Shown one piece after another: positions 9,930 through 39,660 of a stretch of DNA of 64,000 nt (position 1 is its first letter; each line of letters starts with the position of its first letter). Position numbers and translations under genes: made by a program. The notes below the pieces were generated by a model. The model was not told the DNA's origin, did not search any database, and worked only from the letters and a program-made list of their open reading frames with translations. This DNA is from Bispira polyomma (taxonomy: Eukaryota): assembly GCA_965649765.1 (NCBI GenBank), contig OZ287758.1:6758001-6822000 (forward strand). The letters run 5' to 3'.

Positions 9930-10981
9930 TTCTCTGAAGTATCACTTCTATGCATATGATACACAGATTTACGTGCACCTTACTCCTAACACATCAATCG
10001 GTGCCTTGGAAGTCCTTCAGAAATGCTTAGCAGATGTTCAAAATTGGATGGCACTAAATAAGCTCAAGCTGAATCCTGCTAAAACTGAATTCATATTGTT
10101 TGGGTCGGGCACTCAATGTGCTGAACTGTAAAATTCTTTTCCTGCAAACATTCTTGGAACACTGTTATCCCCAACTGATAAAGTGAGGAACCTGCAAGTT
10201 TTGTTTGATAGTGATTTTTCATTTTCCAGTTATATCCAATCAGTGTGTAAGTCATGCTTCATGGGTCTCAGAGACCTCAGGAGAATCAGGAGGTACCTTC
10301 CAAAATCGGTTGCAATAACTGCAGTAAATGCTCTGGTTGGTAGCAGACTGGACTACTGCTATTCACTGTATCGCAGCTTGACCAAAAAGGATCTAAAGAA
10401 ATTGCAATGCATCCAGAACTCATTGGCACGTCTGGTCAGTTGTTCTGCTCAGCTTTTAAATGCTTCACCGATTCTGAAGTCACTCCACTGGCTCCCTGTT
10501 AGGTATCGGTGTGTTTTTAAAACTGCTACAATAGTATATAAGTTTCTTGATTCAGGTTTGCCTAAATACTTTGAACCACACTTGAGTTACTACAAGTGCA
10601 ATGTCAACACCAGGAGAGCCGCTCCCAAAAATAGATTCCTTCTTGTTCCAAAATATAAGTCCAAAGTACACAGGTCAAAGGTTCACTTTGATAAAAGTTT
10701 TGCAAATGATGCCCCTACCCTATGGAATAGTTTGCCCCAACACATTAGGACAGCTCCGTCCCTGTATTCTTTCCGGCGCAGTTTAAAGACCTATCTGTTC
10801 AATGATGTAATCCCTCCATAGTCTCTTTCCCATTCTCAGTGGACGCATTGATGACAACTTCCTTCTGTCTATCACCTGTGTTTTTTGACTCTGGCTGTGG
10901 TTTTTTTGCGCCTTAGAATTCGTTACAACGAAAATAAGCGCTAAAAAAGTCTGATATATTATTATTAGTATTATTATTACT
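9930..10981 (+). mobile_element. 5'-truncated L2/CR1-group LINE (RT C-terminal half, 3'UTR, (TAT)n tail)
   Basis: Frame reads HFYAYDTQIY (degenerate YADD), WMALNKLKLNPAKTEF, SRLDYC, LHWLPV, APTLWNSLP, FRRSLKTYLF; in-frame stop at 10129; GCGCCTTAGAA..AAGCGCT tail followed by (TAT)n. Confidence 0.92.
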
Positions 10982-22896: not shown

Positions 22897-23692
22897 AAAA
22901 CACAACGCCCAGTCTGAAGTTCCCGCGATGAAATGCGAAAAAGTTACAATGTGAAAAGTTGCAAAACCCATTGGAAATTATGGGTAATCTTAAAATGTTG
23001 ACCAATGTCTGAGAGATGACTGGAAGTCCCATCACCGGAGGCGCACCACAGGAACTGCTAGTATGGGGGTGTACTACTAACTATATACTACTATCAGTAA
23101 GTGAGCATTTCCATGCAAGCAACTTTCTAAGACGACCAGCCAAAGGCTGACAGCAATTCTGACACTTTCATTGATTTATAAGCAAGTGTTTCCATGTGAG
23201 CAACGCCTACGGGCGGCGGGCAATGCCAGGCAATTTTTTCTGTACCAGGAGCAAAAACAACGCCTAGCATCGCCTGTTGCCATGTAAACATTGCTAATTT
23301 TTTATTAATAACTCAGGAATTAGAGAATGTAATTTGTCAAAATATGGTAATGAAGCTTATTGTATTTGGTTTATTGTGCTTTTTGTTGTATCAAAATCGG
23401 TTGAGAAAAGGCTAAAATAGGTTTATTCATTTTTCTTAAATAATTCAATGGACAAATCAAAACTGCCGATTGCGGACATGGAAAGGTACACTTAAACAAA
23501 TCGCCCAGTCTGAAGTTCCAGTGATCAAATGCGAAAAAGTTACAGAAACCATCGCAAATTATGGGTAATTTTAAAATGTCTGAGAGGTGACTGGAAGTCC
23601 CATCATTGGAGGTGCACCCCAGGAACTGCTAGTATGGGGGGGGGGGGGGGGAGGTGTGTGTGCTTTACTCACTATATACTACTATCAGTAAC
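22897..23692 (+). repeat. Diverged ~200-bp direct repeats (22897-23100, 23494-23692) flanking MITE M1
   Basis: CGCCCAGTCTGAAGTTCC...CTATATACTACTATCAGTAA in both copies. Confidence 0.85.
23100..23492. mobile_element. Diverged MITE family M1 copy, opposite orientation
   Basis: Left TIR AGTGAGCATTTCCATGCAAGCAACTTTCT; degenerate right TIR CATGGAAAGGTACACT. Confidence 0.8.
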
Positions 23693-23844
23693 TGATTTTT
23701 TCCTCTCACTAACTATATACATAGGCTGGGATGAGACACAAACCATTTATATCGATGTTGCCCAAAAGGTTCTGCAGCAGCCTGCCAAAAGCACACAGGA
23801 ACTAGTGGCAGAGAGGGCAACTGATCATCGATCAAGCGAAGTAT

Positions 23845-24040
23845 TTGATTATACCCTTGGACAAGGTACTTTACACAAAGTTGTCCCTCTCTACCCAGGT
23901 GTATAAAATGGGTACCCGGCCGCTAATGGGTGTTAGTCTTTGTGCGCTGTATGTGGCAGCATGGCTAGTATGCTTTCTGAGGGAGCTGAGACCGAAACAA
24001 TTTGTTGAAAAGTGAAAGAAACCAGGCTGGGGCAATAATT
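23845..24040 (+). mobile_element. CORE-like SINE family A fragment
   Basis: CCTTGGACAAGGTACTTTACAC..CCCAGGTGTATAAAATGGGTACC. Confidence 0.85.
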
Positions 24041-24519
24041 TGTCAAAGAGCATTTTCAACATCACTGTTATCAAATATACAATAATAATATTATTAGTTT
24101 CCACCATCAATAAACCTGGCCACCATCAATAAATCTGGCCACCACAATATGACCAAAGATGTTGTTGGAAGTGACATAAAAATCTCACCTAAACACAAAT
24201 TAAAGATGCTGTTGAGATACAGGAAAGACACTGCTCTGTTTGCTCTGTAAAACCCACCAAGAGGGCTGGATATAATCATTTCTCCATCGTTGTCACCTAT
24301 ATAAAAAAACATTCTCTCAGTTGAGCTTTCATCACTAGAAACACTTTCTTGGTTTGGGAATATTTTTTTAAAAACAATCTTTTCAAACACGATTACGCCC
24401 CTCAGTTCCCATCCTGTACACCCCCACATCCTTCCTCACGACCTGGCTATGTCATTAGACTTTTTAATTAGTTAACTGATTCTGTTGGGGTTTTTTTTTT
24501 CATTTGAGAAGAAGCTGGA

Positions 24520-26528
24520 TATTTTATTAATAGAACAAAAAGCCATTATATTTATTTCTTGTTTTATTATAAATATTTATTAGACTGATTTATTATGGCT
24601 AAACACTCTATATAATATGTCAACAGGTTTAATAAAATATATATAGATATATTTAAAGACAATTTACAAAACAAGATAGAAAATATATAATATAATATAT
24701 AAGCTACAAGCATATCAATTTAGATTTTATCAGATTAAACAGATTTGCAGCAACGTAATTATTCATTCTACATGTACATCTACATAAATATATGTGTGTG
24801 TATTAGAATACAAATTTACTTCAGAAAACTATATAACAACTGTCTAGCACCATTTGAAATCAGCATCTTTATATATAAATTATATACAAATAAAATATAT
24901 ACTCTAAATACAGTCATTTCAGAACGAAAACTGCTGGATTTTACGTTTTTAGTTTTCAAACTGTCATGGATGAAAAACCATTAAGTCCTTAAAGAAAAGG
25001 TATTTTATTACATGATACACAATATAATATAAGAAATTTGCTTATGCAAAAGATCCACTTACTATATTGCTTGACCACAGCAAGGTATTTGACACTGCCA
25101 CTACATTAAAAACATTGTAATTTTCTAAATTGGTTTTAAAAATTAATGAAACTTAATTAAACAAAATAAACAATACTGTCATTTATTTCAACCAATAAAA
25201 GAAATGGAAATAAAATTGTTTCTTGAAGGTTGAAGTTAATTGAAATTTGGTGATTTCATTGTATTGATTGTAATATGCAGTGATAATTAAAATACCATAT
25301 GGTTAACCCTTTTTAGGAAGAAAAACATCTTCATCTATAAATGACGTTATATAAAAATTTATAAGTAAAAAATGTAAGTTATAAATACAATACCAAAACA
25401 AAAAACCCGCTTGATTTCATTGGGGTTTACGTTTTTTTGGGGTTCAAGCATTTCACAAAAAGCCACAAAACAAAAAATGTAGTACATTTCGCATTATCTT
25501 ATCAAGGACCCCGATAACTTTATCGCTGCACACTTCATTTATTACGTGATAATTTTCAGCTCGTAATATATAGCATTGGAGCCCATTGTTACCAGCAAGC
25601 AGCTAAGTTTAAAAAACAAAGAAACAAAAAAAAAAAATATTTTTCCCATAATCACAGGTACCCCACAGTATATAAAAGGCAAATTAGTGTATATTTTGTA
25701 TTTACAAATTGCTATGTCTAAAACACCCTCTCATGGAGCCGAAACTCTTTTGCATTAAATCATTTTTAACCAACACCTATTTTTTCTTTGGAATCGCGAT
25801 TAACTATAAAGTTATATAAATATATATATAACACATATACACTTTATATATATAAGTTATAAATAATATTAGATATTAAGAGTGATTAATGTGATTACAA
25901 TATATCATATGATACAATGTATAGCTAACTGTGTATAAAAACAAATACAAAATGGTAATGTCATGATACAAACGTTTTAGTACTTGCGCGCGTGCACACA
26001 AACCAAGGAATATCAGTGTTCGTCTCTTGTGTCGAATTTGAATGCGTTAAAAAATTACACCTGTACATCTGAATGTTCAACCAGGTGATCATAGGCCACC
26101 ATTCACAGTAAAAACACCAACACAATATGGCAAAGGTTCTTCCATATATATATATATATATATATATTTAACCCCTCAATCCATCTTTAAAAAAAAACAT
26201 TTTAGCTTGTATCTCATACCACCACAACCTTTTTACCAACACAGCATACTCCAATGTGTATCCAGTTGTGTCACACTCAAAAATCTTAACACAATCTCCT
26301 TTCACCTTAAGTGAAGACTTTCCACCATCAGTAAGAGAGAGCAGGTCAGCACAAGTACCAATGTTAATCAAAATGAGGAATGAGGTTCCAAAGCAACCCA
26401 TATCAATGCAAATATCAGACTGATTGCAGACCAATGTGTCTTGGTGCACACCAGTATCCTCTGATTCCAACTCGGGAGGTAAGTCACCAGTTTTACTTAG
26501 CGCATTTCTTGTTTTGCTATGCTCCTAC
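24520..26528 (-). other. Predicted GATA456 3'UTR (~2 kb)
   Basis: Very AT-rich, transposon-free stretch after the stop. Minus-strand AATAAA cluster at ~24523-24594, plus proximal AATAAA at 25538-43, 25182-87 and 25004-09. Confidence 0.6.
24845..24864 (-). promoter_or_regulatory. Near-perfectly complementary miR-29 target site in the GATA456 3'UTR
   Basis: The + strand reads TAGCACCATTTGAAATCAGc, matching miR-29(b) nt 1-19 (UAGCACCAUUUGAAAUCAG, recalled). No complementary 5p arm nearby. Confidence 0.75.
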
Positions 26529-39200: not shown

Positions 39201-39660
39201 TGACCGGCCAAGTACCCGGGTAACTGGCCGTGGAAGGCAGGTGATGGTTCATTCCGGCGGTGTAAGAGGGCAGGTCGTAGCTGAAGCTTGCCGAGAGGGT
39301 GCTGGGTGTGGAGGGGGTGGTGATCACGGGCCCGTTGCTGCTGGTGCTGCCACCAATGCCATTCTGTAACATACTAGAGGAAGGGTGGGTGGTTGGCGGC
39401 ATATAGAGAGGGGCGCTGGCCCCTAGGGTTGGCGAGGTCTGCTGATGTTGTGGTGGTGACGAATCTGATGAAGCAGTTGATGTAATTGAGGGCAGGCTGC
39501 TGCTCGCTGGGGGTGATCCGGATGTAGTATTAAGGATTGCACCAGATCCCACGGAGTTGTAAGGGCTGAAGCTACTTTTCCATGTTGGGCCTCCGAGAGC
39601 AGAGCCTCCAAATAGACTAGTACCCGTCTGAGCCCCTCCGGTCACCAGTTGCATGGCCAT
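26529..39660 (-). CDS. GATA456: GATA4/5/6-class (pannier-like) GATA zinc-finger transcription factor, spliced CDS join(complement 39660-39036, 28716-28553, 28193-27959, 27049-26529), 514 aa
   Basis: Two CX2CX17CX2C fingers ([25 protein letters not shown]; [25 protein letters not shown]). Linker [21 protein letters not shown] and IQTRKRKPK are GATA4/5/6-type; GATA1/2/3 would read SAARRAGT, GDPVC, KLHN, TRNRK. All three introns are GT-AG with matching phases (1,0,1). Exon sum 625+164+235+521=1545 nt. Confidence 0.95.
27959..28193 (-). CDS. GATA456: GATA456 exon: C-terminal zinc finger plus basic region
   Basis: TTTGCAG|TCG TCG TCC ... ACT TCT G|GTAAGA; encodes [13 protein letters not shown]...[25 protein letters not shown]. 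Confidence 0.97.
28553..28716 (-). CDS. GATA456: GATA456 exon: N-terminal zinc finger
   Basis: TTACAG|AG GAT GCC (phase 1) ... AGA CTG|GTGAGT (phase 0); encodes [55 protein letters not shown]. Confidence 0.97.
28840..29160 (+). mobile_element. Degenerate L2-type LINE 3' fragment in the GATA456 intron (antisense to the gene)
   Basis: [22 protein letters not shown]-like remnants with frameshifts; AAGCGCTTT..AAGGCGTTTTAT tail. Confidence 0.7.
32112..32126 (-). promoter_or_regulatory. BMP-responsive Smad1/5-Smad4 element GGCGCC-N5-GTCT
   Basis: Minus strand reads GGCGCC ATGTG GTCT, inside a GC-rich unique patch (32090-32160) of the large GATA456 intron. Confidence 0.5.
32470..32712 (-). mobile_element. 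CORE-like SINE family A
   Basis: A-box TGGCCTAGTGG, B-box GGTTCTATCC, core. Confidence 0.85.
32770..32972 (+). mobile_element. V-SINE-like tRNA SINE (related copies ~12410-12566-, 20580-20725-, 22160-22272+, 35590-35915+, 46175-46320+, 58890-59410+, 63230-63455-)
   Basis: tRNA head, AAAGTTTGTCAGGTACTT, 3' GAAAG(T/C)GACGTAAAA and an AAATT-type tail shared across copies. Confidence 0.75.
33339..33783. mobile_element. MITE family M1 (445 bp), preceded by a partial tandem copy at 33136-33331
   Basis: Same TIRs, TA flanks, internal hairpin 33601-33671. Confidence 0.92.
34944..35405. mobile_element. hAT-type non-autonomous element (462 bp) with 8-bp TSD ACTTAATG, inserted in a SINE
   Basis: TAGGGTTGAG...CTCAACCCTG termini; TSD at 34936-43 and 35406-13; internal GTATT(G/A)CCCAC repeats. 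Confidence 0.9.
36215..36257. repeat. (TA)n microsatellite (others at 26144-26167, 27060-27090, 37473-37495, 49037-49080, 51653-51673)
   Basis: Directly visible. Confidence 0.95.
36912..36991 (+). repeat. 40-bp tandem duplication
   Basis: AAACCAG(T/C)ATCAATGTCCCTAATACCAAAATTTAGAAAT x2. Confidence 0.9.
37947..38009 (+). repeat. 32-bp tandem duplication
   Basis: CATTTAGATACACCAGGCTGGTATTCTGAAA x2. Confidence 0.9.
39036..39660 (-). CDS. GATA456: GATA456 first coding exon (S/P/T-rich N-terminal activation region); the exon itself starts at the acceptor at 39680
   Basis: ORF 39016-39660. Acceptor TTTTTCAG ends at 39681; donor G|GTGAGT at 39035 (phase 1). APLYMPPTT and PTYMNKW resemble the GATA4/5/6 N-terminal motifs SPVYVPT and YPAYM..W. 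Confidence 0.85.

Follow-up and report, generated by a model that had tools for sequence, protein, structure and literature searches.

The window, a 64-kb stretch of the Bispira polyomma genome, carries on its minus strand a gene that is placed by its sequence in the GATA456 class. Searched exon by exon, the gene encodes two zinc fingers of the GATA type that carry class-456 residues, and the best protein matches of its exons are GATA4/5/6, pannier-like proteins, and the GATA456 proteins of Lottia and Capitella. A probable N-terminal coding exon is contained in an ORF at 39016..39660 (59% identical to P0002, splice ends predicted), and the two zinc fingers are encoded by exons at 28553..28716 (first finger) and 27959..28193 (second finger, PF00320). 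The last coding exon (26529..27049) is 47% identical to the related ORF P0001 and ends with ISTAIGATV followed by the stop codon at 26531-26529, a C-terminus that resembles a motif at the end of the Capitella ortholog. Elsewhere in the window, two ORFs (10183-10821 on the plus strand and 54383-55141 on the minus strand) resemble, by eye, the C-terminal portion of reverse transcriptases from non-LTR retrotransposons.

The coding region is followed by a block of ~2.0 kb (24520..26528, minus strand) with 29% GC and essentially no interspersed repeats that probably represents a long 3′UTR. High-copy interspersed repeats at 22990-24540 and 27060-27640 of the window lie on either side of the last exon and UTR, which are unique, and the contig depth in these repeats rises up to several thousand times above background. 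Past ~24540 they start just beyond a distal cluster of five AATAAA signals (24594, 24581, 24568, 24556, and 24528; cluster 24523..24594, minus strand). The AT-rich, repeat-poor block ending past this cluster is compatible with a 2-kb 3′UTR, which would then contain the miR-29 site described below. Three proximal AATAAA signals (25543, 25187, and 25009, within 25004..25543, minus strand) lie between the stop codon and the site, and the one at 25187 has a U-rich downstream stretch. Use of the distal cluster would include the site in the mRNA, whereas use of a proximal signal would exclude it. The original prediction correctly placed the site upstream of the distal cluster but underplayed the three proximal signals.

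The predicted miR-29 target site occupies 24845..24864 of the minus strand and begins 1,665 nt after the stop codon of GATA456, in line with the ~1.7 kb given in the original prediction. Re-reading of the plus strand agrees with the miR-29-like letters reported there, and the first 19 nt are identical to the 3p arms of the two genomic mir-29 hairpins. The minus strand forms Watson-Crick pairs with nt 1-19 of the miR-29-3p that is common to both hairpins, and since both mature forms have a U at nt 20, the minus-strand G forms a G:U pair at this position; the pairing proposed earlier thus holds for the animal's own microRNAs. The duplex comprises 20 contiguous pairs, with an 8mer seed match (24845-24852, minus strand) and pairing that is unbroken through nt 9-12 and continues past nt 16-17. 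Nucleotides 10/11 of miR-29 lie opposite the junction between 24854 and 24855, the same predicted cut position as given before. The duplex energies of the site with the two mature forms are -32.1 and -32.4 kcal/mol, compared to -32.3 and -36.5 kcal/mol for a perfect complement. The flanks of the site are 83% AU, and in the local fold the site is predicted to be mostly paired in weak AU structure (mean unpaired 0.16). Independent short-read contigs from three DNA runs of one study carry 24845-24864 unchanged, which rules out an assembly error. A repeat origin was also considered and is ruled out, as the 141-nt region around the site is unique in the genome and the few repeat matches in the GATA456 3′ region are short, weak, and located away from the site.

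In the 1.035-Gb assembly, the 19-mer occurs exactly three times, at the site and at two loci on contig C4 (C4:68890333 and C4:68902456), which lie 12 kb apart on the minus strand. These two loci represent the mir-29 genes of the animal itself. They both fold into hairpins (-28.5 and -33.7 kcal/mol) in which the 19-mer forms the 3p arm; the hairpin at C4:68890333 passes the Rfam RF00074 mir-29 threshold with 59.4 bits, and the one at C4:68902456 folds well and scores under the Rfam gathering score. The two mature forms differ only at nt 21-22, and the site is unable to discriminate between them.

The original prediction considered this pairing improbable by chance, which is borne out at 0.01-0.025 per genome for miR-29. 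Extrapolation from 284 three-mismatch and 13 two-mismatch matches gives ~0.011 exact 19-mers per genome, and with Markov models the value is 0.014-0.025 for orders 0-3; orders above 3 are biased because the pattern itself is part of the loci used for training. In 596 Gb of prokaryote genomes the 20-mer is found a single time, and viral contigs have no match to it. A broader expectation considers every conserved microRNA, using estimates of ~60-100 conserved mature forms and of ~1.5% of the genome as sense-strand 3′UTR. With that number of mature forms, an estimated 1-2 chance 19-mer matches are expected somewhere in each genome, and for a perfect site of any conserved microRNA in any 3′UTR the expectation is ~0.02-0.04 per genome, a value that rests on the same estimates. 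Such a value is small, but in a very large scan it has to be reckoned with.

Linked GATA456 paralogs have been described for annelids and molluscs (PMC2383905), and here, too, a second GATA456 gene is found, at a distance of 125 kb and in the same orientation. Its putative 3′UTR of 2.5 kb is AT-rich and contains a 7mer-m8 and an 8mer miR-29 site (C11 ~6657150-6657620, minus strand), where shuffled sequences have a mean expectation of 0.10 (two sites, P=0.006; ~0.03 over five paralogs). In the 3′ regions of six distant GATA456 genes, from Capitella (two), Lottia (two), Helobdella (one), and Elysia (one), neither an extended miR-29 site nor a miR-29 seed near the stop codon or in the 3′UTR is present; the 3′UTR of the Capitella ortholog is seemingly only ~150 nt long. 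The site is hence not pan-lophotrochozoan, as the distant annelid and mollusc loci do not have it, and for the originally proposed miR-29 "switch" on an endomesoderm regulator, conservation is unsupported beyond this lineage. The close relatives found are P0001, P0002, and P0123, the contig of the latter ending at the stop codon, and a profile search for further close GATA456 orthologs returned nothing more. A Tegillarca locus (L077) taken up for comparison proved to be GATA123-like and was uninformative.

Perfect miR-29 sites are found in a second mRNA family. A metagenome scan for the 20-mer returned six matches, four of which are prokaryote- or phage-like and ascribed to chance, and two of which are animal mRNAs (L047 and L049). 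Both mRNAs encode members of the IGFBP-Kazal-Ig (IGFBP7-like) family that are only 43% identical in their proteins, and both carry the site on the mRNA strand shortly after the stop codon (L047:350-369, 49 nt; L049:649-668, 122 nt). Including their relatives, the marine metatranscriptome contigs with a perfect site (L047, L049, L079-L082, and L083-L084) come from at least three other animals. Their sites, 49-122 nt after the stop codon, are the full complement of miR-29 nt 1-19/20, and U20 faces either G or A, each of which can pair with it; in the relatives of the second mRNA the site is kept within a diverged UTR, in one of them with A instead of G at this position. Because the IGFBP7-like mRNAs of several animals share such a site, perfect miR-29 sites appear to be kept by selection in invertebrate mRNAs. 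This is not conservation of the GATA456 site itself, and the IGFBP7-like mRNAs would, judged by sequence, be the better-conserved candidate for slicing or for triggering microRNA decay. The IGFBP7-like gene of Bispira polyomma (C5:38.99-39.01 Mb, L058) contains neither a miR-29 7mer seed nor an extended site in the ~7.8 kb that follow its last coding exon.

The best explanation for the GATA456 site, to which we give slightly more credence than doubt, is a selected, lineage-restricted, fully paired, and sliceable miR-29 target in a long-3′UTR isoform of GATA456, of the miR-196/HOXB8 kind. Provided that the UTR reaches the site and that microRNA and message are co-expressed, miR-29-3p from either C4 gene would be loaded into a DEDH-type Argonaute and bind the GATA456 mRNA through the 8mer seed, with pairing extending through nt 19-20. 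In addition to the usual repression through the seed, the Argonaute would then be able to cut the mRNA opposite nt 10/11, and GATA456 mRNA would be cleared from cells that express miR-29. The choice of a proximal poly(A) signal would allow the message to escape. A single AGO-clade gene was found (C11:37.697-37.703 Mb; L068, L070), and its D-E-D-H tetrad reads as intact in the exons; several PIWI-clade genes are located on C3, C6, and C8.

The rate of slicing by human AGO2 has been shown to depend on three features (PMC11100590). miR-29 has U10, C7, and C17, which is the unfavorable state of all three, and the slicing of GATA456 mRNA is therefore probably slow. Slow cutting may in consequence coexist with seed-type repression or with some decay of the microRNA. 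Annelids express GATA456 genes in midgut endoderm and in mesoderm (PMC2938726), and miR-29 is seen in the apical crescent and in mechanosensory cells of Platynereis larvae (PMC3939940). With these expression sites, the target site may plausibly serve to remove stray GATA456 message from cells that are positive for miR-29. The siRNA-like miR-29 control of the original prediction is in keeping with the full pairing geometry, its improbability, and the catalytic tetrad of the Argonaute; its conservation is unsupported beyond this lineage.

The slicing of HOXB8 mRNA by miR-196 in vertebrates, cited in PMC3975064, likewise involves a conserved microRNA, the 3′UTR of a developmental transcription factor, and near-full pairing that covers nt 10-11. 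The microRNA, the target, and the phylum are different here, and the mir-29 genes reside on a different chromosome rather than in the cluster of their target. For miR-196/HOXB8 both cleavage and conservation have been demonstrated, whereas the GATA456 site is known here from DNA sequence. Features of sliced targets that are present here are the unbroken pairing, a cognate microRNA in the same genome (the two C4 hairpins), and a DEDH Argonaute. If it works at all, the GATA456 site would work in the miR-196/HOXB8 manner, which makes it a candidate member of this group. Cnidarian microRNAs also direct cleavage, e.g., miR-2026 and HoxD in Nematostella (PMC3975064), where near-perfect complementarity to a transcription-factor mRNA is found as well. 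Cleavage is common in cnidarians and rare in bilaterians, however, and miR-29 is a bilaterian family. The third comparison is with Nrep/libra, the vertebrate trigger of miR-29b decay (PMC10899785), which shares with the GATA456 site the miR-29 family and extensive pairing in a 3′ region, with an 8mer seed and extensive 3′ pairing. In contrast, the GATA456 site is paired throughout, while validated triggers are usually, but not always, unpaired at their center (PMC10899785). Furthermore, the host genes are not homologous, and the two mature forms of the worm cannot be separated by the site.

Two of the rival readings trace the site to a microRNA gene. The mature sequence is present on the plus strand, as it would be in an active, noncanonical mir-29 gene antisense to GATA456, similar to miR-127/RTL1, and nt 1-19 of the 3p mature form are identical to those of the precursor family RF00074. 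Unlike members of this family, the site locus has no 5p arm, stem, or model match: folding of both strands gives no hairpin (z +0.3 to +1.8) and only -3 to -9 kcal/mol compared to -28 and -34 kcal/mol for the true mir-29 genes, the Rfam mir-29 model returns only noise at the site even at E<=10, and Rfam has no matches over the whole 64-kb window. The site failed the hairpin test and is not a mir-29 gene, as was originally stated, and the antisense-gene reading is highly improbable. A relic or a short copied fragment of a plus-strand mir-29 precursor, in which the 5p arm has decayed and no function is left, would explain why the two upstream bases match both precursors and why the first precursor agrees with the locus at 24 of 25 positions. 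Extended to ten positions, however, the upstream flank matches the two precursors at 5/10 and 2/10, which is no more than random near-matches reach (1-7/10) and leaves the relic unsupported. No trace of a 5p arm is seen, the mir-29 genes lie on another chromosome, and neutral decay would not spare exactly the mature arm while losing the rest. This origin, already ranked as less likely in the original prediction, is improbable.

The remaining two readings accept the site as a complement of miR-29 and differ in what it does. It may be nonfunctional, either as a chance 19-mer or as a sequence beyond the poly(A) site in use that never enters the RNA. The three AATAAA signals between stop codon and site and the missing conservation across the six distant GATA456 loci point in this direction, as does the chance expectation over many microRNAs, which predicts a few perfect matches in 3′ regions (~0.02-0.04 per genome) in a very large scan. 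Against it, the chance per genome is small, strand and position are correct, the linked paralog carries miR-29 seeds, and the same site is conserved in mRNAs of other animals; we regard this reading as unlikely, if still a serious contender. Alternatively, the site could mainly destroy or soak up miR-29 through target-directed microRNA degradation via ZSWIM8, the host mRNA being incidental and the site being free to move between host genes. miR-29b is known to be degraded through this pathway, and centrally paired triggers sometimes work (PMC10899785). The predicted slow slicing of miR-29 targets would leave time for decay, and the distribution of sites, with the worm's IGFBP7-like gene devoid of the site that other animals' copies carry and its GATA456 gene provided with one, would fit a change of host. 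Validated triggers usually have a central loop, however, and the conformation that has been solved does not accommodate a paired center (PMC10899785). The genome holds no centrally mismatched variant of the site, and pairing stops at nt 20. The host is moreover the mRNA of a transcription factor, and such mRNAs are usually scarce. Given the absence of a central bulge, a decay trigger is less likely than slicing, and we consider it distinctly unlikely.

Slicing by microRNAs is rare in bilaterians, with 24 transcripts for 20 microRNAs in mammals (PMC11100590). The original prediction knew of no description of this site, and the literature search likewise found none of miR-29 with GATA456 or IGFBP7, of microRNA cleavage in lophotrochozoans, or of microRNA slicing in annelids or molluscs. 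For a sliceable target, a fully matching miR-29 site on a GATA factor of gut and mesoderm yields one precise prediction, the cut at 24854/24855. The perfect sites in IGFBP7-like mRNAs of other invertebrates further suggest that siRNA-like miR-29 pairing is recurrent outside vertebrates. In its widest form, this idea holds that invertebrate miR-29 has recurrently been paired with a fully complementary endogenous site, located in IGFBP7-like 3′UTRs in several lineages and in GATA456 in this worm, as an old, undescribed slicing or decay circuit of bilaterians whose host gene can change. We consider this speculative and rather doubtful. Recurrent siRNA-like pairing by miR-29 outside vertebrates would be relevant to the extent to which the "ancestral" slicing mode persists among bilaterians and to how miR-29 came to be susceptible to target-directed decay.

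Further near-matches to miR-29 are located on C8. The minus strand at C8:22837842-22837860 is a near-perfect miR-29 complement with an 8mer seed and 19 pairs, one of which is a G:U at nt 11 (-30.3 kcal/mol); 0.6 one-mismatch matches to the 19-mer are expected by chance. An inverted duplication of ~600 nt with 87% identity is found at C8:10877251 and C8:10880003, and both copies hold a one-mismatch miR-29-like 19-mer with the mismatch at seed nt 2.
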